This document shows, in pieces, positions 5,459 to 53,023 of a stretch of 64,000 nt of DNA. How positions within the stretch are numbered: the stretch's first letter is position 1; each line of letters opens with the position of its first letter. Source of the DNA: Mytilus edulis (taxonomy: Eukaryota). Where the stretch lies: contig NC_092351.1 of assembly GCF_963676685.1 (NCBI RefSeq), forward strand, positions 57,226,001 through 57,290,000. The letters are read 5' to 3'. Under the pieces are notes generated by a model. That model was not told where the DNA came from. It searched no databases and saw only the letters and a program-made list of their open reading frames with translations. The translations under genes and the position numbers were made by a program.

Positions 5459-5801
5459 ATGGCGACTCATTTTAGAGCTCCCACACGTTTGAATATTAGT
5501 CCTTTCGCAGATACTGTGTCAACAGATTCAGAGACAGTGATGATAAGGAACCGATCGTTGTGGATAGCTGTTTCAGGTTTACAGAGCACATTTCATGCCT
5601 ATCAAAAAGCAATGGAAGAATTGGTAGAAACGCCTCTTCAGAATCTTTCGAATCATACTGACATCCGTGCGGACAAAGCTAGGCTTAAGGATTCTGAGAA
5701 GATATTGAGGAAACATGTACTATTACTTATCGACGGTGTAAAAACCATGAAGAAAGCTATGACTAAACACAGTAAAAAAATCGATGAATTACTTACTCAA
5801 G
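5459..5801 (+). CDS. Putative first coding exon of the coiled-coil/Hsp110-lid gene (114 codons + 1 nt; unrecognised helical protein)
   Basis: AAAATGG start context, open frame MATHFRAP...KKIDELLTQ with amphipathic composition, and donor CAAG|GTAAAT in phase 1, matching the next exon. Confidence 0.72.
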
Positions 5802-8800
5802 GTAAATTTACAAACGACTATTCTTTTGCTGATTTTCCTAAAATGCTTCTGTAATTATTGCTAGGACTTTCATCTATTTATTGTCATTAGTTAAAATAAA
5901 AAAAGTAAGTGAAATGTAGTTATCTTAGAATAAGCCTTAGATCGACGAAAAACAAACAAAATGGGAGTTTACATATTCTATATGACATTCTTTAACTTGA
6001 CTTAAAACGTTCCGAATATTTCACGCATTCAGGGTGAGAAATAGTAACAATCATATATCAACCGATCAAGTAAAAATAAAATCAATTGGAGACACGGATT
6101 CACTAAAAAAAAACAACATGAGAACATTTGTTGATACCATTCTCCTTTCATAAACCCCCTCAGCCAAGGTTGACCTTATTTGAATTTGGCGGTTCTGTTT
6201 ATGTCCTTTTTGATAAAATATCTCCAAACGTTACAGCGTATTTACACATTCCATTCTTAAAATTGCATAGGTTAAGCGATCTTTACGAACGCAAATGCAG
6301 ATCAGTGTTCCAGAAGCATTGGTTTCATTTATTAGCAATAGGTCGATCCTACTGTTAGTGGATTATAAGTCCCCATGGGTACCATCAGCTAAGTAGATGG
6401 TGCAATGGTACTATCATCAATTATAAAATACGTATTTAAATTTATCAGCTAATTATATTTACGTACCACTGACTTCAAGTTGTTTTGATTTTATCATTCC
6501 TGATGAACTTAGACCGTTGATTTTCCCGTTTGAATGGTTCTACACTAGTAATTTTGGGACCCTTTATAGCTTGTTGTTAGGTGTGAGCCAAGGCTCCATG
6601 TTGAAGGCCGTACATTGACCTGTAATGGTTTACTTTTTTAAATTGTTATTTGGATGGAGAGTTGTCTCATTGGATCTCACACCACATCTTCCTATATCTA
6701 TTAGTTTAGAGAAGTGCTTCGGACGCACGAAATTTAGAATGTTTTGATTTCATACACAAGATGATTTTCAATAATTAAAACGTATAATGTATAAAACAAA
6801 CATTCAAATCGTTTCATTTATATCATTAATGTTAGTTAGAACTACTGGTAGTCGATAAGTCTGAGTAGAATTTAATTTCATATGCGCACTAATAAAAAGA
6901 AACATTAAAGAATGTTTTTATTGTCTGACTTTCATTTTTTTTTAGACCTAAATAAAATTGAAAAAGGAAATAAATGGCTATTCTATTTATTTTTTAAATT
7001 ATGAAACAAATTCAACAATTAAAGGGGCACTAGCTGTCAAATTCAAGTTCACTCATTTGACTCAAATTATCATATTGATTTATAACATACTAAAACGTTG
7101 ATCCAATGTATATATAGTCTTTAATAAACAATTTATAATGAATAGGGTCGGATATATGTATCAACACTTCGTTTGTATTTTAGTCTAGACACAGTCTAAC
7201 TAGGCATAATGTTGACCTATAAAGACTACCGGCGGTCATATAACCCGGTTTAAACACAAACATAGATACAAAAGCGAACTTGTACAATCGGAATTTTCTA
7301 TATTTTTCTAATTTCATTTTATAGGTTATAAATATATCTTAATCATCCTTTTCCCCTGTATAAGAATAAGCCTTTTTTTCAAATTAGTCAATCGAATAGT
7401 GAATAATATAGCCTCACTGAATTCGTATTCATATAAACCTCAATTCAACGACTTATCTGGGAGATGGGAGATGGGTTATGGATGTATTATGCGTTTTCAG
7501 ATATTAAAAGAAAAAGAATGTCAAAATTTCAAATAAAACAAGGGTAAATCCATTTGATTGACTGATTCGATACACAAAAACTCATTACTATATTATCAAG
7601 ACCCTTATACATGTTCTCTGTGTTCTTAACGCAGAAATTTTCGTAATAGTTCATAAATAAGTTTGTGTATGAGTCCTTAGCATAATTCCATTAATATTAA
7701 CCACAGACTGAGTGATAGTCTTTGTGGTGCTTGACCTCTTTTCACCCACTCAACAAATATCAGACTAAGAGTAAAAGTAGCAGGTGGACAAATGAACGTC
7801 AGCCATCCTTGAGAAGAATTAGTGCTTTTTAGCTACATGTGCTATAGCATCAGGAAAATTCCGTCAACAATGGTTAATTTATTTTCAAGGAGTTGAGATA
7901 ATTTGTATTCATACGGGAATTATGAGAATCTATTTAAAGAGAGAAAATCTCATTCCTATACATGTAAAAGCGCTGATTTACGCATATATTTAACCTATTT
8001 AAAATAGTAAATGAAACAGACTAAGAAAAATCAAATTGCAGGAGTTTGCTTTCTACTTATATCAATATTTACGTAGTTATAGGATTATATGACCGTCGGA
8101 GGTCTTCGGAGATTACCTTGGTGGGTAATTAGATGCAAATGCCTTAAATATAATCAAAAGCAAAAAAGAAATTGATGTAAGTGTGGGCAAGTTTAATCAT
8201 ATACAAATTATCTATTTAATAGTATTTCCAACTTTGTACTTTATTCATATCTATTTTATCCTATATCATAATGATCTTACTATATTGAACATATTTTGTA
8301 TTATATGGTCCAATGACTCCAAATATTCTATGTAGGCTCTTTGATATAAACCACCACTGACTATTGGACAAACTATTTTTCTTAATAGTTGTTTTATCTG
8401 GTTCTGGCTAGTTTGACAGTTCACCTTTTGACTATATATACTGTAATGTTAAACTATACAGTCAATGCAGAATAAGTAACACCAGAAGCAACACTATGAG
8501 CCGTATCCAGCATTATGAGGCATTTACATTAATGGGGTTTTCAAATTAATCCATGGTTAAAAATGTTTGTCTTAAATATTTTATTTGTTTTCATTTACTT
8601 TGCTAATTGTATTTCAAACTTTATTTTTTCTTATTTACCTGTTATTAAGTTTTATTGTTGTATAGTATTTTATTTATAGGTTAGACTATACTTGGTGATG
8701 TTTTATGAAGATTTAAGCCCCAGGCGGAGCCGAGGGTTTAAATCTTCATTAAACATGACCAAGTATTGTCTGGCCAATTTAAAACATATTCACACTTTCG

Positions 8801-11441
8801 AGTGACCTTTCAAAATTATCCTTTCCCATTGTAATATTTAAACATGAACAAGAGTTCACTTTTTATAATGAACTAAATGTAAAACGTAGGTAATCATCGT
8901 TTCAATGGATGGAATGAAATAGCTGTGACATAGTTTGTCAGGACCAAATGGATAAATTGTTTTTCTTCTGCTTCAGGTAAAATTTAATACTTATTTATCT
9001 TGAGATTTTTTTATTTTAAAAAACAACACAATATTATATAACTCCCTTTTTGAAATTTGATTTTTTTTTTATAAATATAGAACTCAGTACATATATTGTG
9101 TTTTTCTGAAAAAAAATTCCTTTGCTTTATATATCAGCAATCTGGCATTGTTTTCTTGAACATGTTGAAAGAAAAAACAATCCCTCAAATGTCAGGTATA
9201 TACATTAAATAAATACTATTTTACCTATATCGTTACCCCAATTGTTTTTTTTGTTTATTCTATATATTTGTACCATTAGAAAATGTATGAAAATTTGCAA
9301 AATTCACAATGTTTTGTTTTAATCTTTGCTCTTTCACCTTTTATCAGTAGACTTTTTTCCTATGGAAAATGCCTCAGGGAATTGTACATTTCGTTAGTGC
9401 ATTTATTAAGAGTTCACTTTCATACTTAACTGACAATGAAAAGTCATTCACGTATAGCATTTCATAGTGCATGGAAGATCATGTACTATGAAAATTAGAG
9501 TGGGAAAAACTGACTTTTCATTGGTCGAGAAGGGGTGAGTATGTTCTAAATAGTCGTATGGTCTTACTTACTTCAGTGAACATTTTTCATTAGAATTGAT
9601 TAACAAATTGTTTACATTCAGAGCTGTCTTTTAACTGTGTTTTTCATTATTTTGCATTTGCAATTGTGTAATAAAAAATAATATACATTATGTGCTACAA
9701 TATGATATATTCATTTCTTTGTAAAGTTTTATTATTTGTCATTAGCTGTATATTTTAGATATGTCGTTGCCTTCTTTTTATATATAATAAAGTATTTGAA
9801 CGTTCTGCGTTCAATTCATCTAAGCCTTATTCCACCTGTTCAAATAAGAACTTATATGCAACAGCACGGCCTTCAGAGATGCGAAACCCCATACCATATA
9901 CTCGACAATAAAAGGTTTCTGAGCCAAACAACTGTCAGTATATAATAGGTCTTAGTGAAGCTAGTGTGTTACTCTCAAGAACCAAGTTAGAAAACTTCTT
10001 AAAGTTTATACCACAGACTTACACTCCACATGGAATTAGTCAATCGATTAATGAATAATTTGACCTAACTGAATTCGTATTCATGTAACCTTCAATTCAA
10101 CTACTTAGCTGGGAGATGAGTAACACATGCATTAGGCGTGTTCAGTTATTGAAAGGAAAAGAATGTCAACATTGAATGTGAAACAAAAGGTAAATCATTT
10201 GATTGACTGATTCATTCCTATACAGTTAAAACGATGATAAACATATATATTTACTAGTAGCCTATAATATAATATAAAACAGACAAATCAAAAAATCAAA
10301 TTGCACGATCTACTTATATCTATATTTATGTTAATATCGGGCTATAAACCATTGGCAATCTTCAGAAGTCACTCCAATAATTGAAAGGCGTCAAAACTAA
10401 AATACACACGGCACACTAATACAATTATCGAGTCCATGCAATGCATTATTAGTTTACTATTGCATACTAATTTTGATTAGATTTCAAGTATATCCTTTTC
10501 ATTTTGGATGTTACATTCGATCAAATTCCGGTTGTCGATTATTTACCATATTGTGTTGTGAAAAGCCAATGTGGCTGTACCTTTTAAATGCTTTGATAAC
10601 AGTTCTTTTATTATGTCTTCTGTATGCTATAATGGTCGTATGGTTAAATATGCATTAAGGGTTTTGTGATATTTGTTACAAGTGTTTAGCTTCTTTATTG
10701 ACGTATTGAACCTTATTAACATTACTAGTGGTTGTATTGATTCCGTTTCCTTGGGCATTGTCTAAATCAAATATATCCTTTCTGTACTTTTTGTTTGATC
10801 AAAATTTTGATTACTTCGATATTTTATATCCTCTTTTGAGCAGACGTCTTTAGCTTTAGTTCACTTGACCTACTAAGTCATTCGATCATTTGCCACCCGT
10901 TTGCGTTCTTACTCCGTTGTCTGTCTGTCCATCTGGCCATCCGTTCATCGTCTGGTATCGATAAAGATCTTCTCAATTAAGACCTCTAGACCAAATTTTA
11001 ACCAAACTGTAGAGCTGCATGATTCGTAGGATATCTAGACGAGAATAAAGTGTGTGTTATTCAATTCTTTTTAGATGGTTAAACATTGATAATAGTAATA
11101 AATGCAGTGTTTTATTTATTCCCCACCGACTTGAGATTTCAACTCAAATCTGAAACGATAATAATCATGTTAAGTTCGGTATAATTGTACAATCCTATTG
11201 GGAGTTACTTTTCCTGAAATAATACATTTTACGAAATGTCTCTGTTTTAAGTTAATATCATGAAAACTATAATAAATCATGTGAACAAATTATTCAATGA
11301 GTTAACATTTAAAAGTAAGTGGAATACAGAAATTGTAAATGAATTCCCTACAGGAGATTTTTTTAGTTAATATAGTTAAAAGTCACAGGTTTGGGTAGAA
11401 ACGATGATAAATGAAGAGCGTTCAAACTTTAAGTGAAAAAA

Positions 11442-11579
11442 CAGGGGCAGATCCAGCTATTTTAAAAAGGGGGTTCCCAACCCAGAGTAAAAGGGGGGGG
11501 GGGGGTTCCAACTATATGCTCCCATTCAAATGCATTGATCGGCCAAAAAAAGGGGTTCCAACCCTTGGATCCGCAAATG
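11442..11579. mobile_element. Small MITE with CAGGGGC.GATCCA-type termini
   Basis: Imperfect inverted termini CAGGGGCAGATCCA...TGGATCCGCAAATG; GC-rich against the background. A related element lies at ~50895-51015. Confidence 0.5.
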
Positions 11580-12952
11580 CAAAAACGATCTGCAAAGTCG
11601 GAAGATTTACAAATAATTAAATATAATCAACATCGCCAATTGATCCTTTCTATGAGTTCTTGCCCTTGAAAGATTATTTTTACCAAATAATTCGCTAGAC
11701 TATTGTAAAAAGAGATAAACTTACAACATACAACAAAGATGTTAAGCCCATAATACCTACAAATAAGTAATTAAAACCACGATGTTCGATCGATTTCTTG
11801 TAGGGTTATTCCCTTGCCATTATTTCAAACACGTAAGGAGCTGGGTTGAAAACTTCAATAACTAAAAATGATCAGTATGAAAAAAATGTACTTGTTTTGC
11901 CACCGAACTATATATATTTTCCAATTTATACAATTATGGCTGTTATAATGTTAACTATAATAAGTTTGGTTTAAAGTTTTATACGGAAAAGGTTCAACAC
12001 GACAAGGTATATCTACCCTGAAAATCAGAAAAAAATTGTAAAGTTATTGGCCTTGAAATATTTTTTTTGCATTTCTGAATGTGATCGTAAATGATTAAGA
12101 ACCAATGTTAACAGTGTAATTGAAAATTTGATTTATATTAGTTCCGAAGATAGAGCACGTGTTAGTCGAAAATGGCAACGATAAACGCAAAATGGCATGG
12201 TCATGGCAATATTTCGCTATGGAACCTGTCAAAAATTGAAATCAGAAATCGTAATATTTAGAAAAAAATATAAATGATGAAACATGCAGAGGTAAAAAAT
12301 TGTCAACTTTGTTATGCAAGTTTGACTTAAAAGATACGACCACTCAATAAGGTAGATTATAACCGTGAATGTTCTAGGACTACTGGCTATATCTCGAAAA
12401 CTAACAACTGATGAAGCCTAAAATTTTAACCATGTTTGACCTTTATAGGCAACAATTTAAATATTAGGGGAATTATGATCTTTCAATATAATATGTAATT
12501 TTATAAAAAAAAGTCTCAAACAGTTAAAAACAAAGAAAAAAGTACAGGGAACTTGTATTGGACAGACGTTAACCTTCAGAATCGACTATGGTAGGCTGAA
12601 CCAGCTTTTCTAGAACAGAAACACACTTGCAATGTATAACTCAGAATCTTTTAAGCGTATGGATGCAGTGTTCTCCTTCACACATAAATATGCAAGTCTT
12701 TAGTCTTATTATATCAGTATTCTTATTTGTTTCATCGTTTTTTCTTCTTTTTTGTTATAAAAAGGATGTAGACGTGGTCAGATATTTAGTTGAACTTCTA
12801 GAATTTATCTACATTATGTTAAACGCAATGCCTAACATTCTAGTCTTGAAAAGATTTTCAGCAAAGTTTTGTTAAACATGTAGGTAAATACAGAAAAAAA
12901 GATGCAGGATATTATTATGTTTCATCTTTGCCTATTTTTCATTTCTATTCAG

Positions 12953-12999
12953 ATGACCCGGATATCTCCAGAGGATACAATGATGTAGAAGATCACAAG
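12953..12999 (+). CDS. Putative exon 2 (47 nt; DDPDISRGYNDVEDHK)
   Basis: Long pyrimidine tract + CAG acceptor and AAG|GTAGAT donor. Phase 1 in, phase 0 out, which exactly bridges exon 1 to the phase-0 repeat exons with no stop. Confidence 0.65.
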
Positions 13000-13796
13000 G
13001 TAGATTAAAGAATAAATAAATTTTGTACCAAAAACTTATCAATAAAGGCAACAGTAGTATACCGGTATTCAAGAGTCATAAATTAATTGAGAAAAAACCA
13101 AACCGGGTTACAAACCAAAACATAGGGGAACACATCAACTGTTAGAGGAAAACAATGAATAAACAGGAGCACTGAAGTGCAACAAAAGCAAACGCCACCA
13201 AACATAGAAACGAACTGTTTGACAACGGCTGCCAAATTCCAGACTTGGGGCAGGACATTTTAATAAAAAAAAAGTGGTTTGAACTTGGTCTAATGGAATC
13301 TCATTACAATTTTTTTTTCATTTTATTACTATGGCTCTTTCATTGATTAGATTAAACATTGTTTAATAAGTATTTTACAATCATTTTTATAGCTATTTAG
13401 CAAGTTACTATCAAACTTTTTTTCACAGTAGGATAATCAATAACCTGTCCAATGTAACATTTGTACTGGCAGTATTCTAAAATACGAGATAATACATAAC
13501 ACAATGATTTATTTAATAATTTTATGCTTTATTCTACATCCTAGTATATATATATAATTAAAGCATTGTAACAGATGAGTTATGGCCCCTGAACCAAGGT
13601 GATTAGTGTTTCATAGCTCCGCAAAAAAGTGATTTTTTTTAGTAAGATTGCAGCTAATAGTATGGTATGAATTGTTGAAGACTGTATGCAATATATGTTT
13701 ACGGTTCTTTTGAGACTAAAACATTCAAAAACGGACAAATAATTTAGTATTTATCAATGTGTGAAGACAAAAAAAAATCCAAACGAAAAAAACAAA

Positions 13797-15045
13797 ATGG
13801 CCACCTCTTATGCCGAAGCAGCTAGAGATGAAAACAAATACAAAAACAAAAATGATGACTGCCTGATTGGTAATGTTAAACCAACATTTCTTCTGGAAAC
13901 AGACGCCTTTGGTGAAAATGATATGAATCATTTAGGTCAGGCCCATTCCTTATAAATATAGAGGTATATCGAGCAATAGAAGAGCAGGTACCAGTTAGAG
14001 CTTTAATTGGGTTACAGAGAGTTCGAGGCATCTGGCGAATATATTTCGACAATGAACAAGACAAAAAAGAACTACTGTCATTGGGGTTAACCATCAGAAG
14101 AAAATCAATAACCTTGTACTTGAGAAACCCAAAGGTAACCATGATTAATGAAGAACCAAATGCTATAAAGGTACGAGTCAAAAAAGTTCCTCTATCAGCA
14201 GATGACGACCAGATCTTGAAAACTCTTGAAACCTCAGTTAGGAAGTGTGAGATAATCACTCACTCCAGGGAAAGATTGAGAATTGACAATCTTGTATCAA
14301 AATGCAGAACAGGTGATAGGATAGTCGTATGCAAAACTTTCAATCCGCCTCTGCCAAAGTCGTTGAAAATAGGCAATTATTGGCTACTATCAGCCATTTT
14401 GGCCAAGCATCTACAAGCAGACCAAATATGAAATGTAGTAAGTGTCTAGATGAAGGGAACAAAGCAAACACTTGTCCAAACGGATGGAAGTGTAAAAAAT
14501 GTGGTCAACTAGGACATAGACAATATGAGTGCGACGAGCATTCTGATGTTGAAGTTGAGGAAGAAAATACATATATGACCAACATGGAGGGTGTCTGCAA
14601 TCCAGACATTTTCCATGCAAGTGAAAATGATGTACAGACCAATGAACAAACTGAAGACAACGATGAGTCATTCCAGGATAGTGATGTCGATTCCAAAAGC
14701 TCGACAAAACCTCTCCTAAATACCAAGGGTAGAAGTAGGTTAGAGAGTGACACGGAACATTCGCATTTGAACCTTGGTACTCAGGAAAGTAAATCCGCTG
14801 GAAAAGATAATTCCCAACAACAAAAGGAAAAACCTAAAATTCTTAAAAGTGTTGACAGAAGACCAGGTATCTCGAGGTATTTGACAACAAAACCGAGTCA
14901 TGATCAGAGTGACACTACAAACAGCACACCTAAACAGTCAAAAACAAAGAACATGGAAAAATCTCCAGTAACCCCAACAGAGAATCTGCACGACACAACA
15001 CGAGATGAGACTGCTAAGAAGCCAAAAAAAGAGACGATAATTTAA
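13797..15045 (+). pseudogene. L1/Tx1 ORF1 (gag-like, zinc knuckles), frameshifted
   Basis: MATSYAEAAR start, LIGLQRVRGIWRIYF and RTGDRIV blocks, and tandem knuckles CSKCLDEGNKANTC and CKKCGQLGHRQYEC. Frameshifts near 13950 and 14380. Confidence 0.85.
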
Positions 15046-16196
15046 CATCTGTTAATTAAAATACAAAATATAAGACTAGAACTCTTTTATTTTAAATTAT
15101 AAAAATAAAACTAAAAAAAAATGCATTTTGTCAATCATATTTTTCCCAAAACAGTATGTATAGCACTGATATCATTTATTTTTAACTGTATATACTTTTC
15201 GAGATATGTCTCAAAATGTTTGTTGTTATGTGACACAGCTGATGAAGGTTGTCCACTTAAAATATCCAGACTGACAGATAGTCTAATCAATACCAATAAT
15301 GAAGATCATAAATGGTCTGTTCTTCATTAAAGTTTTATCCTGAAAAAGAAAAAGACAAATAAAAATAAAAAGTACATTAATGTATGTGTATTTAATAAAG
15401 TGGCAAATAAATGTTATGGTGTACTAGAGAATCTAGTCATGTCGATGATAATATTTATGTCATGTTATTATAATATTAAATTAAAGTATTTACCATCTGC
15501 TACTAAATATCCTGATCGAGAAAACATATTAATCAATCTTAAAAAGTCTCCATAAAAAGCGGATGAAATAACCTTGACCAGAAATTCTATAAATACTTTA
15601 ATGTTTAGGTCAAAATATAGAACGTACAAAACTAAAAGTAGAGATCAAGTGTACCATGTGTACCTGGACAGCGAAAGTCTAAATCTATTGCAAAACAAAT
15701 ACCATATACTTGACGAATATAATCATCACGAGAATAGGTCATCAATACTAATTATGGAAAAGATCGATAACATAATACATTTTACTGTACGGGAAAATAA
15801 TTTTACACTGTTTAAACATGTTAAAATATCAATCAGGAATACACCGACTATAAACATAGAGAAGATAGTAAACAAACCGATATTACTTCAGAAAAAAACA
15901 AACACAGTTCTAAATTCATCTTTTAAATACCAACGATCTAAAAAACGAATCGCAATCAGTGAGGCGTATAACGGTATTTCTCAGATAAAACAAATGCTAC
16001 ATCAGTATGTAAACTGCCCTATAACTAAGTCTTCTTATACAGAAACAAGACTAAAAGAATTTAGTTTTAAGTCAGTCATAAGAAATAACAAAATAACAAT
16101 AAAGAAAACAAATCCTAAATGCTTCATTATTAATGGTAAGAAAGATAACTCACCATGCTACTGTATGAAATTTAAAATATCCAACTATAAACCACC

Positions 16197-19100: not shown

Positions 19101-19963
19101 TTATAACTGGATTGATAGTAACATACTATATATAAATGACATAATAGATAAAAGAGGAAATATATCAGAAGAAATGATTACTTCAAAATTAAGAAATAAA
19201 AGGAATTGGATTTTTGAATACTCAAAACTAAAAAATCTATACCAAAGCAATGGACAGACATATTAAAATCAGAAGAATCATTCAAAACAAAAGTCCACAT
19301 CAACCGAACAAAAACTAAACTTAGAGATTGTAATGATGTTCTTACTATTAATACTAAAAACATATACAAATTAGTATTAAGTGTGTCAAAAACAGAAATA
19401 CCAGTAGGATTTTTAAAATTGGAAAGAGTCTTTAGCAAAGGGAGACTAATAAATGAATTTAAAGACTCTATTAAATTTAATTTTGAATATCTTAAAGATA
19501 ATAAAATAAAAATGTTTAGGTGGAAATTAATGCACTTTATTTTGCTAAATGAGGTGCTGCTTTTTCAGTGGAAAATTTCACAAAACAATTTGTGTTCATA
19601 TTGCAATGAAATAGATAATTATAATATTTTTTTCATTACATGTTCATATCATAAAACATTCTGGAAATCAATAAAAGTTTTACTTAAAAAAAGTCTTCAT
19701 AGGCGAACATGTAATAAGTCTTCATTCGTTGGTTATAGGATACAAAATTCATGACGATGCATACTTTGCGCTAAATCATCTGCTTAGCGTAAAGTTCTTT
19801 CCAGTCTATAAAACACATTATGTTTCTAATAAAAAAAACCAAAGCAGTAGACACAATAAGAATTTTTGAATATGAGGTAGAAAATACTGTAGAACTATAT
19901 AGTATTGACCAATATATAGATCAGCAGTCTATTAACACAGGTGTTGAATATTTTGAAGAATAA
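16197..19963 (+). pseudogene. L1/Tx1 ORF2 (APE endonuclease + reverse transcriptase + C-terminal Cys motif), multiply disrupted
   Basis: Endonuclease motifs TVNVNGL, IQETH, NIYAPN, GGDFN, IDYFL, TDH; RT motifs NYRPITLLN, LDFSKAFD, GIRQGCPIS, QLADDTT; C-terminal CSYC. Several frameshifts plus in-frame stops (~17480, ~17730, ~18934). The end coordinate is approximate. Confidence 0.93.
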
Positions 19964-24240: not shown

Positions 24241-24338
24241 GAGAGAAACATTGAAGACATGGGCAAAAATTAGATATTGAATCTCTTATTCTTGAAATGG
24301 ATCAGTTGAAATCTGAAGAATCGAAGGATAGAGTTAAG
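24241..24338 (+). pseudogene. Repeat exon copy 1, disrupted (98 nt)
   Basis: CAG acceptor and clear similarity to the copies at 26994 and 27914. Phase-0 reading hits TAG at codon 11, and the ancestral GTAAGG donor reads TTAAGG. One extra A in the A5 run would give 33 open codons to AAG|GTTATG. Confidence 0.65.
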
Positions 24339-25574: not shown

Positions 25575-25604
25575 AAAGGGAAAGACCTTACTGTATTTCT
25601 TCTG

Positions 25605-41414: not shown

Positions 41415-41555
41415 NNNNNNNNNNNNNNNNNNNNNNNNNNNNNNNNNNNNNNNNNNNNNNNNNNNNNNNNNNNNNNNNNNNNNNNNNNNNNNNNNNNNNN
41501 NNNNNNNNNNNNNNNNNNNNNNNNNNNNNNNNNNNNNNNNNNNNNNNNNNNNNNN
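41415..41555. other. Assembly gap (141 N)
   Basis: Run of N. Confidence 1.
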
Positions 41556-43758
41556 AACTAATCAATTATTCAATCAATACAATTGAGAATGGAAATAAAG
41601 AATGTGGCAAAGAGACAACAGCCAAACCAAAGAGCAGAAAACAGAAAACAACCGAAGGCCACCAATGGGTCTTCAACACAACGAGAAAATCCCGCAACCA
41701 GAGGCGGGCTTCAGCCGGTCTCTAAATAAAAATATGTACTACTTAAGTGAATATGGACTTACAGTAAACTAAAATAAAAAAAAACATAAAATAACTAACA
41801 AAGGCCAGAGTCTCCTGACTTGGGACAGGCGCAAAAATGCGGCGGGGTTAAACATGCTTTGTGAGATCTCAACCCTCCCACTATACAACTATACAACTAT
41901 AGCTAGTCAGCTAGCAACTGATTCATAAATTAAACTACTAGCAGTAACTGACATGCCAGCTCAAGACCCCAATTAAACCGATCAAAAGATTATATAGATA
42001 TAATAAGATGTGGTATGAGTGCCAATGAGACAACTCTCCATCCAAGTCACAATTTGTAATATGGAATATGTGTACTGTGTTTCAAATTAATTAGACTGCA
42101 ACTTCATCAAAATCTACCTTTACCAAAAAACTTTAACCTGAAGCGGGACAGACGGATGAACGGAAGAACGAACGGACGCACAGAACGAACAGCATAAAGT
42201 CCATAAATGGAACGTAAAAAATGTGCTGAAATTGAATGAAGGTCTGGTTAATCTCAATGAGACCATAATCGGCATATCCAAATAAATTTCCCTAAGGTCA
42301 CAAACAATATCTTTCACTTAAAGATCTATTGCCATTACTTCTGCAATATAGTATTTATCAATAATAATGTAAAAGAAATTGTATGCATGTAAATTAAAAA
42401 CGACCAGGGCAGCAAACTTAGCAGTCCTTTCAATACCAATCAAACACTGTAAAAATATTTTTGAATATTGTTCTCATTGATATAAATAGTAATTTTGTTA
42501 TCAGTAACTTAAAACCATATTAAATATTATTGTTTTACACATCAAGGTACTACAATCTGTTGTTACCTATGCTTTAGCATTGCACAAGGTCGTGTTTTTC
42601 TCTTATTGTTAATAACGTCTTTACACTAAATCCATTGGATGTTGGATTTGCACTGATTGACATTTTGGTCTTAGATACATGATTTTTGTATTAGTTTTTA
42701 TTGGCTTTGAACTAGCTGTCAGTAACTGCTATTACACTCCGATCTGTGCTTTTTTGTCCTTTTTACAGCGGATGACCGTGAAGTCATTCCGGTGTATTGA
42801 TGCGAGAGAGCTTTCCATTACGTAACTTTCGTGTTGAACTTGTAGCCGATCTATAATCTGTAAATACGCGGAAATCATCGAGTGTAAAATAACATTCATA
42901 ATCGCTTGTTATCCACTTATTTCTTCACTGTGTACTTAAAAATTTATTATTTTTAGAACATAAATTAAAAATATGAAAATGTTTTGTTATATATTATATA
43001 TATGTACTTATATAATTATTTTCTGTGACTGTATCTTACATTAATTTGTAGGATCCTTTACTATAGATAATTTAGCTGATCTGTTAAAATAACATCTCCA
43101 TGCCTTATATATCATGTACTGTAAGTACGACGTTAGATTAAAACTGACGTGGAAAGGTTGGACTATGGCTTCAATATTCAATGTTTTAAGAGATCATGTT
43201 TTACTTGGCGTAGCCTTAATAAGTTGGAATAGATCTACGAAGACCAAAGAATGGTCATGTATGGTTTGGCACTTGTACATGCCCACCGATGTCCAGATAT
43301 TGTTCGAAATTGTTTTTGAAAAGTTACGATGCTACCGGATATTGAAAAACATGTCCTTTTTTCATGGAAAATTAAACTGTTACGGCATATTACAGAACAC
43401 TAAACTGTCTTTCATTGCTGTAAATACAAGTTAAAAAGCTAACGTGGGTTACATTAAAGCTAGAAATCCAAATCCTCCGGCAACAGATAATTAAAAAGAA
43501 AAAGCACATGACCTTTACGTCGTTTTGCATTTGCGCCGATTTTAACATCATTTGAGGGTTAAACTTGCATTTAGCGGTGTTCAGGTCCTAAATAGAAAAT
43601 AAAGAGATGCGGACTAAATGTACACGGGACAAAGTTGCAATCAATACATAGACAAAATACAAATTATCAACGAGCAGGGCTTTTATTCCTGTTCTTCATC
43701 TTGAAAGAAGCTGGAGGGATTTCAACTCGGAACCGGACCATTTATACCCATTATACAA

Positions 43759-43825
43759 TAGCCACATAGGTTAGTGCATCGGACTACAAACTCAAAAGGT
43801 TCCTGGTTCGATCCCCGTTACGGGG
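43759..43825 (+). mobile_element. tRNA-derived SINE head fragment
   Basis: A-box-like TAGCCACATAGGTTAG and B-box GGTTCGATCCC (43805-43815); no complete cloverleaf. Confidence 0.55.
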
Positions 43826-43965
43826 AGAAAATTACAATCCACTATAAATAAATATGTTTAAACTAACCATAGTCATACACTTGACTATTAGGATTACACG
43901 TTTTTTTTCCTTTATCCTACATATGTCTTTTGATATTGTTCCTATATGATCCTATATGTAAATCC

Positions 43966-44269
43966 TTGAATGTTGAATGTTGAAAATGGATACAAAAAAA
44001 ATAAAATAAAAGAAATGAATGTTGAATATTGAAATCGAATGTTGAATGTTGAAATCGAATGTTGCATGTTGAAATCGAAAGTTGAATGTTGAAAATGGAT
44101 ACAAGAAAAAAAAAAATTAAAAAAATTTGAATGTTGAAAGTTGAATGTTGAAATCGAATGTTGAATGTTGAAATCGAATGTTGAATGTTGAAAATGGATA
44201 CAAGAAAAAAAAAAAAAAATTTGAATGTTGAATGATGAATGTTGAATATTGAACCAACTTGACATCCGT
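43966..44269 (-). repeat. Inverted copy of the left end of the TTCAACA satellite element
   Basis: Reverse complement begins ACGGATGTCAAGTTGGTTCAATATTCAACATTC, matching 36258 onward, including the T-run/CTTGTATCCATTTTCAAC sub-units. Confidence 0.88.
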
Positions 44270-44307
44270 TGTTAACACTGTCAATCATGATGACATCGTT
44301 CTCCTTT

Positions 44308-44750
44308 TTTTAGCTCACATGACCCAGAGGGTCAAGTGAGCTTTTCTCATCATTTAGCATCCACTGTCCGTCGTCGTTCGTTAACTTTTACAAAAACCTT
44401 TGAAACTACTTGGATAAATTGAACCAAAATTGGCTTTACTCAACCGTAGAGTATCTAGTTAAAAAATTATCCAATGACCTCATCAAGGATAAAAAATAAA
44501 ACATAGGGGTAAAATGTAGATTTTGGCTTATGTCTCTGAAATCAAAAGAATTTAGAGGATTACTAAAATGGGAATAAACCTGTTCATCAGGTCAAGATCT
44601 ATCTGCCCTTGAATTGTTTTCAGACGAATCAGACACGCTGTTGTTGGGTTGCTGCCCCTGAATTGGTAATTTTAAGAAAATGTTGCAGTTTTTGGGTATT
44701 AAAATCAATATCATTATAGATAGGGATAAACTGTAAACAACAAGATTGTC
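44308..44750 (+). mobile_element. HINE/Helentron-like element, 5' portion
   Basis: TTTTAGCTCAC...GTGAGC hairpin, GTCCGTCGTC microsatellite, and a core similar to 49661-50790. Confidence 0.7.
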
Positions 44751-45146
44751 CAGTAAAGGTGTAATACCACCATTGATATTCCCCAATTAGTCTTTGTTGA
44801 ATTTGCACTTATCAAAGAAAATATGCAGAACTTATCATTGATTCAAATAACCAAATACTTGGCTTGAGTAAAGTTTTATCCTGTCCAATACGATAGAAAC
44901 AAAATACACGTATAACCATGACTGGATTTAAACTAATGAAATTTTACCTGTGTACAAGCTTTAATAACCATGTAACCTCAGGTTATAGACACCCAAAATA
45001 AAAAAAATAATGGACTTTGAAATACCAAAGATTAACCTAGATTTGCTTCCTTAAAAAAGCAAAATCAAACTGACCAATAGCAAGTATATTAGTTAAGAGA
45101 TGTATTGTTTTGGTCGCTTTATTTATTTGTGAACTTTCCCGTACAG

Positions 45147-45236
45147 GACTTCCTCATGAGAGACATGGCAGATACATATTTTAGCGAAGCTCTATGTGAA
45201 ATGGATGAGTTGAGAAGGGGAAACCAAAGGTCAAAG
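45147..45236 (+). CDS. Divergent repeat exon (DFLMRDMADTYFSEALCEMDELRRGNQRSK)
   Basis: CAG acceptor; the AAG|GTAAGGTTATGTGCTCTAAA donor context is shared with the upstream copies; 90 nt, phase 0-0. The downstream intron is also homologous. Confidence 0.7.
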
Positions 45237-45765
45237 GTAAGGTTATGTGCTCTAAACATTTCTTAAAATATACTCTGTAACACTTTAGATAAAAAAACGT
45301 TGCTATTTTCAACTGATTAATCATAGCAACTCAAAATAGTTCAAAATTTCAGAGAAAATCTACAGCCCACAAGGATTTTTCTATTAACTTAAAATCATCC
45401 ATCAAACCCGAGAAACCGGAAAGTGTGTAGTCAAAAAGGATGTGTTCATTGAATCTCGTTTTGAACTTGTGGCAGGTTATAACATATTTGATAAACTGTT
45501 CTTGGTTTTGAGTAGACGTAATCTTACATTTTTAGGTTTAGAACCTAACCAAGTGTCGAGTGATGAATACATAGCAATAGACGCCTACCTTGTCTATTTT
45601 CGCGCAGTTTCTCGCTCCATTTGGAGTAATGCGATATCCTTGGTTAAAAGACTAGTCTTGTTTTGTTTAATCGTTAATGATAAATGCTATGTGAATATCT
45701 GTTAACTACTTTTGAGTTATTTTTAGATATGATAAAGGTTAATAATGCTTTAATTTTTTCATTGT

Positions 45766-45822
45766 ATTGAATATTCTTGCTTTGAATTGAATCAGTTGAG
45801 AGATTAAAATCGAAGATTACAG
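45766..45822 (+). pseudogene. Decayed partial repeat exon
   Basis: Reads IEYSCFELNQLRD*NRRLQ|GTAAGG; the GAA codon of the other copies is TAA here, and the 5' part is lost. Confidence 0.65.
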
Positions 45823-46707
45823 GTAAGGGTATTTTGCAATACCGTCTTATTAATTTGCCTCTTAATTGGCGTAAGAACTAGATATCAACTTGAAAAACTA
45901 ATGTTTTAAGTATATCAACTGGTTTTTAAATAGATGAGTTATAACAGTGCTTTCAAATAATCTTTTAGTTTCTCTTATCATGACTTTTATGTACGTCATA
46001 TTTAAAAGATGCAGTCCGGAAGGGGATGATTTTTATATCATTTTGTGTATCTTCAATGTGAAGGAATACTAATGTATTTTCTTTTTTAGCTACAACTGAA
46101 AACAAAGCCAGACGTTTTTCAGTTAGGACCTGAACATTTCTTGAAAAGGTTTTTTCTTCATTCTTTATTTTTTGGTTTAAATTTTAATGTAGTATTGGCA
46201 CATTATTTGCTTTCCTGTAAACCCTAAATTAACCCTCTTAAATCTTCTTCTGATCATAATTTATTATGCGAAAGCACATTTGATGTGTTTAACTTTCCGA
46301 AATGAGAGTACTTTAGGGGGAAATCAACATTACTACAAAACACTTATACTTGTGTCTCTATGTATTGTATTGTCATTATTTCTTGTACGGTACTGTTTAT
46401 TTGGATTGATAATCTTCTGTTATCAAAACTGTTGTTAAGTTCAATAAAAAGTTAATTGAAATTTTGAACTTAGAAGGCATTTGTAAATGAATCGAAACTG
46501 TGGTTTCTCTTGTCAACAGGACAGGGCCTTCAGTCTTGTCTGTTACATTTCCAATGAGAATAAAAATGTATATGGAAATTAATCGAAACATAAGAATACG
46601 AAAAACCTGATTTTCGAAAAAAGTGGTCATTTGTTTCCATTTATGTTGGAGAAAAGAGTTCGTTAAACTTTTTTACTAAGTCTTTCTTTTATTTTCATCG
46701 ATGACAG

Positions 46708-46833
46708 AATCAGATAACTATGCAAAATAGGTTTGAGAAAGAGCGAGCTGATGCTAAGAATGCTGTAGAGGAATATGTATATGACATGAAAGATAAACTG
46801 TCTGGGGCCTATGAACCTTTTGTTAGAGAAGCA
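46708..46833 (+). CDS. Hsp110/HSPA4-like C-terminal helical region, exon A ([42 protein letters not shown])
   Basis: The [16 protein letters not shown] signature of Hsp110; AG/GT boundaries, 126 nt, phase 0-0. Confidence 0.95.
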
Positions 46834-47588
46834 GTAAGTAGCATGCATATTTACTGACAAACTATATGGTCAACTTAAAATGCAACTATTATGTTAGCTT
46901 TCCAAATTTTAGTTACTCATGATATTATGAAAAAAATATTTTCCAGGTGATTTAGTTATGTGACTCTCTTATATTTGAATATGCCAAGTTGATTAGTACG
47001 GGTAAAACATGAAATAAAAGAAAATTACCAAAAATTAGAAAATTGGTTTACAGTATGTCTAATAAACGATTATCTATGGTTCTGAAAATATCAAACACAA
47101 TAGGGAAGCTTAAATACAAGGATGTTATCAATCATATGTTTCTAACGGATTTGTGATTCGTTTAAACTTTATCTCATGTAAATGTGTATTCACGCAGTTT
47201 GCACGCCAATGTCGTGTGTAGCTTTTGGAAGTCATTATAAAATTTCACAATTTTAAATAGTTCATGAAATATTTGCTTGAGGTCAGTATGATGTTTTATC
47301 GACCTTGAGAGACATATTGACTGAGGACAATATAACATGGTAACGACCTTATCGAAAGTATAACTGTATAGAAACAAATTGTCATCTCAATATAACACCT
47401 ACAATACTCTCTCCGCCTTTATTTTTTATAATAGAGAATATCAACTTCTATATTTCTATTGGGTTGTCACTGATAAAAAAGGAATATATATAACACTTGA
47501 TTAACCATGACCATTTACAACTGTTACATTACAATATGTTTTAAAATACTGCACATGAAAATCATATTTATTTTGTTTTCCATTTTAG

Positions 47589-47696
47589 AACAGAGAAAAG
47601 TTCAGTAAATTATTATCAGAAACTGAAGACTGGCTGTGTGAAGAAGGAGATGACCAGAAAAAACAAATTTACCTTGACAAACTTACACAGTTAAAG
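47589..47696 (+). CDS. Hsp110/HSPA4-like exon B (NREKFSKLLSETEDWLCEEGDDQKKQIYLDKLTQLK)
   Basis: TEDWL(Y)EEG motif; AG/GT boundaries, 108 nt, phase 0-0. Confidence 0.95.
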
Positions 47697-48736
47697 GTAT
47701 TTTGATTTGTTATGTTTTATTTGAAATCAGTACATTTGTGAGTTAGAAAACATCATATACCTAATCCTGGCCTTGTTTACACTAGTTTATATCATGATAT
47801 ACAAATGTATAAATATATGTATAGCTATATTTGTTTGTAAATTACATACAATATGACATACTTAAATTTTTATGCCACATGTATGGGCATGATTTTTATT
47901 GGTCTGTGCATCCGTTTGTCTTTTCCTTCCTCCGCTCGTTGGTTTGTCTCGCTTCAGGTTAAAGTTTTGGTCCACTGAACATAGAAAATGATAATGGCGT
48001 TGGGGCATACGTGAACTAGGGACACATTCTTGTTTGATATATATAATATGTTGAAAATATAAATTAGAAAGATGATATTCACCCCGCTAGATGTCAAATG
48101 CTTCAACATGTAAGCAGTCTAAAGTCTGCTTTTTCAAGGTAGTTGCAAACCTCTACTTATATAAGTTATGAAAATAACCAGTCAAGGTTTCCTTAAGGTC
48201 TACAGTGTTGGGGGGAAAACATGTTTACTGTTGTGCCAGTTGATAACTGTAATTTTCTGTATAGATTTAGAAAGAATTTTGATTGCTATCACAGAAGATA
48301 TCTTATTTAGACATGTATTTTAATAGCTTCTATAAAAAAAAGTAGATGTGGTATGATTGCCTATGAGACAACTCTCTACAAGAAACCAAAATGACACAAA
48401 AAACAACTATAGGTCACCGTACGGCCTTCAACAATGAGCATACCCGCATAGTCAGCTATAAAAGGTCATGAAATGACATTGTAAAACAATTCAAAGGAGA
48501 AAACTAATGGCCTTATTAGTTATGTACAAAAAATGAACGAAAAACAAATATGTATTACATAAACAAACGACAACCACCGAATTACACAGTCCTGACTTAG
48601 GACACTCATTTTCATACAGAATATTGCGGGGTTAAACATGTTAGCAGGATCCCAACCCTCCCTTAACCTGGGAAAGTGGTATAACAGTACAATATAAGAA
48701 CAAACTATAAAAATCTGTCTATTTGATTACTTTAAG

Positions 48737-48856
48737 AATATTGGTATTCCAATAAAAGACAGATATGATGAATTCCAGTGGAGGCCTGCAGCATTTGATG
48801 AATTATGCCATGGTATACAACATGTCAGGAAATTTTTAGATCTCTGTGGTCAGAAG
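48737..48856 (+). CDS. Hsp110/HSPA4-like exon C (NIGIPIKDRYDEFQWRPAAFDELCHGIQHVRKFLDLCGQK)
   Basis: Matches the GxPIKxRY..RPxAFxEL pattern of Hsp110; AAG acceptor, AAG|GTAATG donor, 120 nt. Confidence 0.92.
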
Positions 48857-49415
48857 GTAATGCATAGTTCTTGAAGTCATTATATCCTCTACTTTGATTG
48901 TGATGCAGGGGTTTATAGCAACTGTTGTGTCCTTCACTCTACACTTTGTCTTCAAAACAACTATAGAATCAGTAACACATGGTATTGCTCACCCCTATCA
49001 CAGCCTACACCTGCTATCAACTTTTACGATGTAAAATTTAATTCAATGATGTTGGCAGTGGCGTCAACAATTTGTGGCTAGGTCAGTTGAAGAGGAGCCT
49101 CTTCTGATAAATCAATGATACCGTAAATTGGGTTATTTTGGTTATAGTTTTATTTTAGTTTATTTGATGCCTCAAATGAAAGTGCCAAAATTAAACACAC
49201 CAAAATAAGGCAAACACTAAAAAATTGAAACGCCAAAATCGCATACCGGTACCACAATATCGTAATGTTAATTGTATGGGAAAATATTTGATGCTATTAT
49301 ATCTTCCGTATTTTTACTACAATTCTATACATAGTCAAATCTGCCAATAAGTAACTGGTATAATTTGACAACACTTTCTAATTCTTACTTTATTGTCAAT
49401 TTTCTAAAATTGTTA

Positions 49416-50803
49416 CAGCACTTCTATAAAAGCATGCAAACAAATCATTGATTAACTTGCTTGCTATATTTGTTGGATGTTTGTTTACTATTTACTGGAA
49501 TTTGATTGGACAATAACCATTAAATTCATTTCATATCAATTCTTATTGTCCAATCAAATCCCAGTATATATAAAATCTGACTGAAACTCCGCCTTCCTAT
49601 TGTTGGCAAACAACCAAGCAAACATAGCAAGTAAGTTGATCAATGTTTTGTTTTGCATTCTTTTTAGCTCACCGTTCCAAAGGAACTGTGAGCTTTAGCC
49701 ATCACTTGGCGTCCGTCGTCGTCCGTCTGGTGTAAACTAGTTCAAACATCTTCTCTTCTGAAACTACTGAACCAATTCAAACCAAACTTAAGCTGAATGA
49801 TCCTTAGGGTGTCTAGAATAAAGTTTGTGTTTTATTTTATGTTTCGTCAAAAAACCTAGCCGCCATAGCTAAAATAGAACATCGGGGTAAAATGCAGTTT
49901 TTGGCTCATATTTCAAAAACCAAAGCAGTAAGAGCAAATATGACATGGGATAAAAGTGTTCATAAGGTTAAGTTCTATCAGCCCTGAAATAACCCTTTGT
50001 TGGGTTGTTGCCACTAAATTGGTAATTTTAAGGACATTTTGGAGTTTTTGGTTATTATCTTGAATAGTATTAATGACAAAGATAAGCTGTAAACAGCAAA
50101 TAGGTTCAGGAAAGTAAGATCTACAAATAAGTTTTGTATGACCAAAATTGTCAACTGGCCCCTTTAAGAGTTATTGCCCTTTTAGGACAATTTTACACAT
50201 TTGTTTATCATGTTTTCTAACTTTAAAAAATCTTCTCCTCTAAAACTACCGAAACCAAATTTAATCTGAATGATCCTTAGGATATCTAGAATAAAGTTTG
50301 TGTTTTATTTTCTGTTTCTTCAAAAACATGGCCGCCATGGCTAAAAATAGAACAAAGGGGTAAAATGCAGTTTTTGGCTTCTATCTCGTAACCAAAGGAT
50401 TTATAGCCAATCTGACATGGGATGAAAGTGTTCATTAGGTCAAGTTCTATCAGCCCTGAAGTTTTCAGATAAATCTAACAACCCATTGTTTAGTTGCTGC
50501 CACTAAATCGGTAATTTTTAGGAAATTTTGCAGTTTTTTGTTATCATCTTGAATGTTATTAATAATAAAGATAAACTGTAAACAAAAACAAAAAAAATCA
50601 GCAAAGTAAGATCTAAAAAATTAAAATTAAACTTTGTTTGATTTCATCAAAAAATAAATTCTTAAGGTTCTTTGATATGCTGAATCTACAAAAAAACAAA
50701 AAAAAAAATACGATGAAATTGGACACTTAAACTAAAGATAAATGCAAAAAAAAATCAAGGTGAGCGATTGAGGATCTTGAGAGCCTTTTGTGTAGAAGAA
50801 CTG
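49416..50803. mobile_element. Palindromic TA-flanked MITE interrupted by a HINE-like element
   Basis: TA|CAGCACTTCTATAAAAGCATGC...GCATTCTTTT[insert]GTAGAAGAACTG|TA, with inverted arms at 49435-49485 and 49608-49660. Confidence 0.7.
49661..50790 (+). mobile_element. HINE/Helentron-like non-autonomous element, near complete
   Basis: TTTTAGCTCACC...GTGAGC 5' hairpin, CGTC microsatellite, two ~480-bp core repeats, and 3' GGTGAGCGA plus imperfect hairpin AGGATCTTGAGAGCCT. Inserted in a T-run. Confidence 0.8.
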
Positions 50804-51533
50804 TAAGAAAACACAGCAAGAAATTTTATTCACACATGTGACACTTTTTTCAGCTTTGAACCACGATATACGGAATTATTTGTAATTGCATCCGGCATAG
50901 TCAGATCCAGTGCCCCCGTTTTTCGATGGAAAAATTTGGTTGATTATATAGGGAATCAATGAAGCATGACTGGAATGAGCCCCCCCCCTTATGAAAAGTT
51001 CTGGATCCGCCATTGAATCTGTATCAGATTCCTTCATGAGGTTAACTTTGTCGTGTTTCTTGTTTGAGAAGTTCGATGATATTTTATCAAATAACATGTA
51101 AATAAAGGCAAAAATCAAACATGTCCATTGGACGAAGCACCACGATTACACACACCAAAATAAAACACAGCCCTTTCAAGAGAAAACTGCCAAAATATCA
51201 CGACGCCAACATTTCCCAATTTACGGTATTTGGTATGCAACTTGTACAAGCATTGGGACATCACATTTTCATTCAGTTAAATGGCCTTGGACAAATAACA
51301 TATGTGCAACACAGGGGGTCATTGGAATTCTGTTCTCATTTTCCTTTTTTAATGAGTCACTTTCAAATTTGAGATGGGAGAATATAAATATTTGTATTGA
51401 ATAGCTTAAAAAATGGTAAATACTGAAGTGGGAAAGGCTGGGCTTCTCATTTGGGATAGGTTAAACAAAAGAAATCCACATGTATGAAAAGAAGGTTATC
51501 AAGATATTACTATGCTGTATATTGTATTTACAG

Positions 51534-51695
51534 GATGAAAAGTTCGCCCACTTATCAGCAGAAGATATTGAAAAAGTCTCTAAATGTCTGGAAGAAAAAG
51601 AACAATGGCAAAACAAAGCACTGATGGACACACAAAAACAAAGTTGTTATGATCCTCCAAATGTTTTAGCACAACAAATTCGATCAACAAAACAG
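51534..51695 (+). CDS. Hsp110/HSPA4-like exon D (DEKFAHLSAEDIEKV...DPPNVLAQQIRSTKQ)
   Basis: DEKxxHL..KV..W..DP pattern; CAG acceptor, CAG|GTGAGC donor, 162 nt. Confidence 0.93.
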
Positions 51696-52828
51696 GTGAG
51701 CCAACTTTAAAATTGGTGTGTTATCATTAATTATATTACAGACTTAGAAATATCATCATTTATAAATTGTACATAATATTCTCTCTATTTAGAGCTGTAA
51801 TGATACACTTAACTAATGATAAGAAACTTATTTAAGGGTTGCGGTAAGATACATTTTGATTACATTCATAATCAATACATAACCTTAAACCCAATACATG
51901 TAGTGTAATATTAAACTACCTTTGTTCTAGGGTTTTTGTTTTTTTTTGTTAACCTGGTGTTCACTTATTATAGCTGAAATACATGCCATTCTTTTTATGA
52001 TGTTTTTAATTTGAAACAAGTATTAACTGGAATTTTGATTGGTTTTATATGGAACGGAACTGAACAGGAATACCAAGAAAATGAATCTAAAATCAAACCA
52101 AGCAAAAATACTCCGGTTCATAACTTCTTCTGTGAATTGTTTCACAACTAGTCTATATATATATATACATATTATATTTTTGTCTATATTGATTTATTTA
52201 TCCATCAACAGTCTTCGGAGGTCATCAGGATGGATAATTAGATGGCACCTGTTCTAAAATACACGGGAAATGCTTAGATATTATAATAAGTCCACCGTGC
52301 ATGGTTAATTGTTTTGTTTGTAATTTTTGTAATTTGAATAAATGTTTTATATAGAAAAGATGATGTGGTATGATTGCCAATGAGACAACTCTCTACAAGA
52401 GACCAAATGACACTAAAAATAACCGCTTTAGGTCACAGTATGGCATTCAACAAATAGCAAAGCCAATACCACAGTCAGCTATAAAAGGTCCCAAAATCAC
52501 AAATATAAAATAATTCAAACCAGAAAACTATTTGGCCTAATTAATGAACCAAACAAATGGACGAAAAACAAATGTGTAACACAGCATTAAATGACAACCA
52601 CTGAAATACAGGTTCCTGACTTGGGACAGGCACATACACAAAGAAAGTGGCAGGGTTAAACATGTTACCAGGATCTTGTATGTTTCAAATATAATTTGAT
52701 GAATTAGGTAAATTGATGAACTAGATTTTAACAGCTAATGCCTAATTTGGAACAAAAGTATTTTTAAAGGATTGAAAATTTTAATCACTTGACGTTGATA
52801 ATTATTGTAATCTTATTTAATATGTTAG

Positions 52829-53023
52829 TCATTAGATACTACGTGCAATCCCATTATGAACAAACCCAAGCCTGAAGTGGAACCACCAAAAGAAGAGAAA
52901 AAAGATGTGAAGAAGGAAGGAGAAAATAATGGAGAGAAAATGGAAACAGATTCAACAAAACCAGGAGAAACACCCGCAGATTCACCGAAAACAGAAGTAA
53001 AACCGGAAATGGACATCGATTGA
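52829..53023 (+). CDS. Hsp110/HSPA4-like terminal exon (SLDTTCNPIMNKPKPEVEPPKEE...KPEMDID*)
   Basis: CxPIxxKPKPxVEPPKEE and the terminal EMDID typical of HSPA4; TAG acceptor; TGA at 53021-53023; AATAAA at ~53376 and ~53797. Confidence 0.95.
   Translation, partial: SLDTTCNPIMNKPKPEVEPPKEEKKDVKKEGENNGEKMETDSTKPGETPADSPKTEVKPEMDID

Follow-up and report, generated by a model that had tools for sequence, protein, structure and literature searches.

An Hsp110 locus with three copies

The stretch of Mytilus edulis DNA analysed here (the window, 64,000 nucleotides, C8:57226001-57290000 on the chromosome-scale contig C8) carries a partial Hsp110 gene, referred to as copy B, that encodes the α-helical lid of the protein and its C-terminal tail. 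This mussel is an intertidal animal known for expanded heat-shock gene families. The searched genome comprises 1.37 Gb, and the surroundings of the window were read over 210 kb. Hsp110 copies were located by a genome scan with PF00012 and by tblastn with full-length Hsp110 proteins, and three HSPA4-like copies, A, B and C, were found within these 210 kb. Copy A is complete. It has 18 coding exons on the plus strand, encodes 846 aa (XP_071126726.1) and lies outside the window at window coordinates -49100 to -20141 (C8:57176900-57205859), with its 3' end 67 kb upstream of the lid-only copy B. Copy B is also on the plus strand and has only the last five Hsp110 exons, which correspond to residues 611-846 of the full-length protein. 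Copy C is on the minus strand, 70 kb downstream of B and again outside the window (window coordinates 141124 to 123228, C8:57367124-57349228), and encodes 562 aa (XP_071126727.1). Lid exons occur genome-wide in copies A and B only.

An earlier reading of the window from its letters alone (the original prediction) had described these five exons as Hsp110-like, had found no exons for the nucleotide-binding domain (NBD) or β-sandwich upstream of them, and had expected a separate intact HSPA4 parent gene. All three statements agree with the searches. The five exons match Hsp110 proteins in tblastn and cover the lid and the C-terminal tail, neither PF00012 nor the full-length Hsp110 queries detected an NBD or β-sandwich exon in window positions 1-46704, and the same tblastn queries recovered copy A as the parent.

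Structure of copy B

The features that make up copy B and its immediate surroundings are as follows, in window coordinates.

41415-41555, no strand: assembly gap (N), the sole run of N in the window, between the upstream exons and copy B
44734-45032, no strand: dispersed repeat of ~300 bp, resembling a short interspersed nuclear element or a miniature inverted-repeat transposable element (SINE/MITE-like), ending ~115 bp upstream of copy B's first exon
45165-45236, plus strand: first coding exon of copy B, 72 nt, 24 residues, start of XP_071124043.1; donor 45236/45237 joined to 46708
46639-57115, plus strand: duplicated segment colinear with copy A, beginning 69 bp before exon 13 and ending 2.3 kb beyond the stop (blastn, copy A against copy B)
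46708-46833, plus strand: equivalent of exon 13, where the retained lid helix begins, invariant KNAVEEYVY motif; 19/126 nt differ from copy A
47589-47696, plus strand: lid exon 14 equivalent; 5/108 nt differ from copy A
48737-48856, plus strand: lid exon 15 equivalent; 4/120 nt differ from copy A
51534-51695, plus strand: lid exon 16-17 equivalent; 6/162 nt differ from copy A
52829-53023, plus strand: last Hsp110 exon, with conserved NPIMNKPKP motif, acidic/disordered tail and stop codon; 5/195 nt differ from copy A

Copy B is already present in RefSeq, where it is named 'heat shock 70 kDa protein 4-like' and is unremarked as a lid-only Hsp110. The RefSeq protein (XP_071124043.1, 260 aa) maps to the window at ~100% and consists of 24 novel residues from 45165-45236 followed by the product of the five lid exons; over its residues 25-260, identity to the M. 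edulis 846-aa Hsp110 (residues 611-846) is 92%. The introns are kept, all ten splice sites are intact and there are no stops. The 24 N-terminal residues have no homologue anywhere and the exon encoding them is unique in the genome; the open frame in which it lies starts behind a TAG, at 45093. Both a CCAAT motif and a TATA-like motif were read by eye 55-85 bp upstream of this first exon, and a search of the window with the heat-shock element pattern GAANNTTCNNGAA gave no match. The dispersed repeat next to the first exon has thousands of first-look candidates genome-wide, at 72-90% identity, and may have supplied promoter sequence to copy B. Copy B is probably expressed.

Duplication boundary and relation to copy C

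The truncation of copy B is a real duplication boundary that lies in continuous sequence. Colinearity with copy A runs from A -25675, equivalent to B 46639, to A -17873, equivalent to B 57115 (blastn), which makes copy B a partial duplicate of the Hsp110 3' end of 7.8-10.5 kb. On the downstream side it includes a homologue of the 3' untranslated region (3'UTR) from 53024 to ~54248 that is 87% identical to that of copy A, and on the upstream side it retains 69 bp of intron 12 only. Exon 12 of copy A is located only 1.5 kb upstream of exon 13, and neither intron 12 nor any Hsp110 exon has a homologous counterpart in the 5.1 kb to the right of the gap (41556-46638). Homology begins only at 46639, with 5.1 kb of continuous sequence between it and the gap, so the missing exons do not lie concealed just within the gap. 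The flanks of the gap show no mutual overlap. The original prediction of a partial HSPA4 duplicate that has the lid but neither ATPase nor β-sandwich exons thus holds, whereas its capture by an unrelated coiled-coil gene is not supported, as discussed below.

Copy C is truncated on the other side. Its exons for the NBD, the β-sandwich and the start of the lid are intact, but a TAG occurs 57 nt into exon 13 and is directly followed by copy C's own 3'UTR and flank copy, 5.4 kb with the lid exons having been lost. Comparison with copy A over 477 codons gives dS 0.34 and ω 0.15, values that point to purifying selection on copy C. Copies B and C are complementary, as both break in exon 13, with an overlap of ~19 residues. 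The divergence of B from A in exon 13 (dS ~0.5) resembles that between A and C (0.34) and marks this exon as old. An origin of B as a piece excised from C was considered and rejected, since each of the two has retained an exon-13 start and a 3'UTR/flank of its own and since A, B and C are about equidistant in the distal flank.

The complementarity of two constrained copies could also mean that the exons of B simply terminate some other Hsp110 transcript. This would be that of copy C, if the contig carrying B were mis-oriented, or that of copy A by read-through. Copy B is on a contig of 72.5 kb that is bounded by two N runs, and flipping this contig would place B downstream of C on the same strand. 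The second gap (114108-114207, 100 N, outside the window) is informative in this respect. The 470 bp on its left side match the 471 bp on its right side at 99.8% identity, on the same strand (overlap region at window coordinates 113638-114678, C8:57339638-57340678). They probably represent two overlapping contig ends that were left unmerged, in which case the gap and one of the 470-bp copies may be artefacts. This overlap fixes the assembled orientation of the contig with copy B. On this ground, together with the stop and 3' end that C has of its own, a single gene divided into B and C by wrong contig orientation was rejected. A read-through from A would require a 72-kb intron across another gene. 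Furthermore, B retains no more of intron 12 than the 69 bp mentioned above, and the N-terminal end of its exon 13 is heavily changed, as expected for a lid that no longer follows the preceding helix. We consider it very unlikely that the exons of B belong to another Hsp110 transcript.

Selection on copy B

The original prediction had proposed a dN/dS comparison with the parent gene. Pairwise with copy A, the five lid exons show 20 synonymous and 19 non-synonymous differences, and dN/dS is 0.20. The 711 coding bp differ by 5.5% overall and by 3.4% in exons 14-18, while mismatch in the non-coding parts of the duplicated tract is 12.8-15.2%. The transition is abrupt: from 3.4% in the exons, mismatch rises to 12.1% in the first 20 intron bases and stays at 11-16% beyond. 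Insertions and deletions follow the same pattern, with none in the 711 coding bp and 104 gap openings in 4120 non-coding bp, or one per 40-50 bp (probability of finding none 1e-4). For exons 14-18 the changes on the B lineage were compared with the neutral expectation, the lineage assignment of replacements being made with outgroup proteins only. No indels were observed where ~6 are expected (P = 2e-3), and there are 7-8 replacements against ~33 expected, about four times fewer (P = 2e-7). The exons of copy B are under purifying selection. The sharp step at the exon borders fits selection acting on the coding sequence rather than a conversion tract, and copy B looks functional because conservation is confined to its exons. 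The marks of a pseudogene, i.e. intron loss, frameshifts, stops and a neutral pattern of change, are all absent from it.

Several observations weigh against a functional lid-only gene. Outgroup proteins assign 14/18 replacements to the B lineage, and some of the B-derived changes, e.g. D31N, Y83C and K212E, are at positions that are 90-100% conserved in 68 Hsp110s. In exon 13, five of the first nine Hsp110-derived residues are changed. Constraint on copy B is thus relaxed, though far from absent. The divergence between A and B is also a mosaic, with dS ~0.5 in exon 13 and 0.11 in exons 14-18, and the proximal 3'UTR of B differs by 8% from that of A as compared to 21-24% from that of C. Exons 14-18 and the proximal 3'UTR were, by this pattern, later homogenised with A, and the similarity is in part due to gene conversion. 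The first exon in the RefSeq model may be an ab initio extension, and among the named members of the copy B cluster there is no B-like protein of M. galloprovincialis or M. trossulus.

These observations raise the possibility that copy B is no more than the remnant of a dead gene, whether or not it is transcribed, and resembles A because of recent or repeated gene conversion and not through selection at the protein level. The mosaic dS and the 3'UTR divergence show that conversion between A and B has occurred, and replacements concentrated on the B lineage, several of them at invariant sites, would fit such a fragment. Partial duplicates are moreover abundant in Mytilus genomes, and a lid-only model in M. 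californianus is nearly identical to the full gene of that species. A conversion tract would not, however, produce a rise in mismatch from 3.4% to 12.1% within 20 bp of exon borders, nor does a dead fragment account for 711 bp free of indels and stops and ten intact splice sites. On balance a dead fragment is improbable, and we retain copy B as a gene under relaxed constraint.

The M. californianus model (XP_052075873.1, P0339, 212 aa) has exon 13 tandemly repeated and lacks the last exon. Its identity of 97-100% to the full-length gene of M. californianus marks it either as an assembly artefact or as a partial duplicate that originated recently and independently. Breakage may recur in intron 12.

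The upstream open frames and the proposed coiled-coil fusion

The original prediction extended the lid exons in the upstream direction to a frame of ~488 aa. In this model 5459-5801 and 12953-12999 are followed by three coiled-coil repeat exons, from which splicing leads over the gap to 45147-45236 and on to the lid. Two features upstream of the gap are relevant here.

5459-13008, plus strand: separate small gene for a 132-aa uncharacterised protein (P0351), which maps at 100% to 5459-5801 + 12953-13008 and ends ...HKVD before the stop
24202-28706, plus strand: four local tandem units with the 'coiled-coil' open segments, copies local only

The formal basis of the fusion was reproduced. All 11 intervals between 5459 and 53023 have AG/GT borders and compatible phases and give 488 codons and a stop, and the repeat units hold an open frame in three copies. 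However, the plus strand of 13009-45146 alone contains 142 phase-0 segments of 84-132 nt in which an open frame is enclosed by AG and GT, and for the middle exons splice borders and phase are therefore no better than chance. Database proteins also contradict the model at its 5' end. The 132-aa protein reads through the donor proposed at 12999 and ends at 13008, its stop being two codons past that donor, and a transcript-derived 148-aa relative (P0352) reads through the donor of exon 1 too. At the 3' end the junction 45236>46708 is indeed part of the RefSeq model, but the upstream extension is not, as the lid protein in RefSeq is 260 aa long and begins at 45165. A search of proteins of 474-1508 aa with this lid revealed no B-like protein of at least 474 aa. 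The repeat exons (26994-28518) had been placed on the same side of the gap as the first Hsp110 exon; they are actually to the left of it. The introns that the model requires contain remnants of long interspersed nuclear elements (LINEs), a 2-kb satellite and the assembly gap.

Homology searches of the upstream segments are in agreement with this. The exons were searched singly, and the spliced proteins used were database proteins only and not the joined 488-aa model. None of the upstream exons matched Pfam when searched singly. The repeat 'exons' have no homologue other than their local copies, and mismatch among the tandem units is 11-22% in the open segment vs 16-28% in the flanks, a weak contrast. 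A protein-atlas search with the exon at 5459-5800 gave unrelated bacterial clusters only. The database proteins do not show a chimera at this locus in the sense of one transcript and one frame derived from two unrelated genes, only the 24-residue first exon being foreign to Hsp110. The coiled-coil fusion is an artefact that arose because open frames were chained, and we regard a transcript of that structure as extremely improbable.

Other elements of the region can be described briefly. The 132-aa protein belongs to a small gene family whose same-chromosome paralogues are 57% identical and in which no Pfam domain was found; paralogues of its exon 1 (5459-5801) are located at C8:58764254, C8:59267678, C8:59343182 and C12:73033250. 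A degraded retrotransposon without long terminal repeats (non-LTR) occupies 14329-19754 on the plus strand and has open frames for a zinc knuckle, an apurinic/apyrimidinic (AP) endonuclease, a reverse transcriptase and zf-RVT. The satellite at 36333-38413 extends over ~2 kb and consists of ~100 copies of a 20-base unit with higher-order periods of 74 and 94. This 20-base satellite explains the GC skew of -0.51 and the long domain-less open frames at 36242-37902. Outside the window, two intronless canonical Hsp70 genes (C8:57137719-57139530, plus strand, and C8:57148999-57150809, minus strand) are found 26-39 kb upstream of copy A. Since these adjoin the Hsp110 copies, the locus is a small Hsp70/Hsp110 cluster. 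Contig C46 (32,728 bp) is 99.9% identical to C8:57170001-57193892, the region in which the 5' half of copy A lies. A ~166-bp tandem array forms the end of C46, which is probably a retained haplotig.

Predicted protein and possible modes of action

Compared with the domains that define Hsp110/Grp170 proteins, copy B lacks the N-terminal actin-like NBD and the β-sandwich with its acidic insertion, as homology to A starts 69 bp before exon 13. The α-helical lid, a three-helix bundle with the Hsp70-contact motif, is present, and so is the metazoan C-terminal extension with NPI.NKPKPK, in which there is one derived change (K212E) at a position with at least 90% conservation. In agreement with this, the Pfam HSP70 match of copy B is restricted to model positions 513-596 of 599, and phmmer aligns the protein to the lid of Sse1 with an E-value of 1e-12. 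An AlphaFold2 model of copy B was obtained from a 68-sequence alignment. It is a confidently predicted all-helical fold of five helices followed by a disordered tail, with a mean predicted local distance difference test score (pLDDT) of 82 and values >90 for residues ~30-210. The Sse1 lid is the best structural match. The first three helices of the model superpose on it with a root-mean-square deviation of 1.0-1.4 Å over 91 columns.

Residues N42, E45, Y47, V48 and Y49 of copy B are invariant columns in the 68-sequence alignment, and N42 and E45 are within the KNAVEEYVY motif, which aligns to KNTLEEY in Sse1 with N572 and E575 as the equivalent residues. Mutation of N572/E575 in Sse1 lowered the binding of Hsp70 to 20% and the exchange of nucleotide to 5% (PMC11479587), and the Sse1 helix bundle contacts the Hsp70 NBD (PMC4753570). 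Because the invariant residues of a motif with the Sse1 residues touching subdomain IIB are kept, we infer that copy B can bind Hsp70. The protein would then be an ATPase-less, Hsp70-binding modulator that acts in a BAG-like manner or as a decoy, or it might dock in trans on copy C. BAG domains are free helical bundles that serve as exchange factors aimed at subdomain IIB of the Hsp70 NBD (PMC4753570). A signature of the BAG family was not found in copy B by Pfam search. One truncated form of human HSP110 has a dominant-negative action (PMC3259994), and NBD-SBD contacts (SBD, substrate-binding domain) of Hsp110 are reported to hold in trans (PMC8424595).

The option of docking in trans deserves separate consideration. 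Copies B and C could form a naturally split Hsp110 in which the lid-only protein docks on the lid-less NBD/β-sandwich protein to give a two-chain exchange factor. The parts are complementary with ~19 residues of overlap, both are under purifying selection, their age at exon 13 is similar, and the contacts just mentioned were reported strong enough in trans (PMC8424595). On the other hand, B and C are 70 kb apart and convergent, an arrangement that does not imply co-regulation, and over most of its length B is nearer to A than to C. A complex prediction with copy C and residues 1-205 of B, carried out without controls, gave no answer (score 0.00) and speaks for neither side. A two-chain exchange factor seems unlikely, although it fits part of the data. 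We are just as tentative about its evolutionary counterpart, the natural fission of one paralogue into a lid-less protein of 562 aa and a lid-only protein of 260 aa, both of which are selected and would either reassemble in trans or function as separate Hsp70 regulators, dominant-negative-like and BAG-like.

In view of the above, the reading that we prefer, with a probability of roughly 60%, is that copy B is a stand-alone gene for a 260-aa lid-only protein which originated from a DNA-level duplication of an Hsp110 3' end and is not spliced to the upstream 'coiled-coil' exons. According to this proposal, the 3' end of an Hsp110 gene was duplicated at the DNA level and the resulting copy gained a new 72-nt coding first exon beside a dispersed repeat. 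The product would consist of 24 novel residues, the α-helical lid (the SBDα bundle and the metazoan helical extension) and a disordered tail. It may act as an ATP-independent binder of subdomain IIB of the Hsp70 NBD, or as the trans partner of the lid-less copy C.

Hsp110 is thought to require both its NBD and its lid for opening Hsp70. Nature would have tested each half of Hsp110 by itself in a selected lid-only gene that neighbours a complementary lid-less paralogue, and if the lid alone binds subdomain IIB of Hsp70, it would represent a new type of ATP-independent Hsp70 co-factor derived from Hsp110. If copy B is merely a well-preserved fragment, the locus still illustrates how a false fusion emerges when AG/GT-compatible frames are chained across genes, repeats and a gap. 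In our opinion the most interesting aspect is outside the claim of the original prediction, namely the complementary and equally constrained lid-less partner at 70 kb from B.

Comparison with known systems

The closest relatives of copy B are the canonical Hsp110 proteins, including HSPA4 and Sse1. It shares with these the helix-bundle fold of Sse1, the KNAVEEYVY motif and, in the case of the M. edulis full-length protein, 92% sequence identity. It differs from them by the absence of the NBD, the β-sandwich, the acidic loop and the first half of the long lid helix, and by the presence of 24 unrelated N-terminal residues. Copy B is unable to bind ATP or to form the NBD-NBD contact that anchors Hsp110 on Hsp70.

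A precedent for active Hsp110 fragments is HSP110DE9, the exon-9-skipped human HSP110 of microsatellite-unstable colorectal cancer, which is truncated yet still active on the chaperone network and binds wild-type HSP110 as a dominant negative (PMC3259994). Its architecture is closest to that of the lid-less copy C. As a somatic splicing mutant, HSP110DE9 retains the N-terminal part, whereas copy B is a germline gene that keeps the C-terminal part.

The isolated SBDα fragments of Hsp70 (PDB 3LOF, 5Z8Q) demonstrate that a lid bundle folds alone, and they are weak structural matches of the copy B model. These are laboratory constructs of canonical Hsp70s, and copy B is a natural gene. For the way in which a lid-only protein could work, the BAG-domain exchange factors provide a possible example, being free helical bundles that lack an ATPase and are directed at subdomain IIB (PMC4753570). 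The comparison goes no further than analogy, since BAG domains have no sequence or Pfam relation to copy B and a different bundle geometry.

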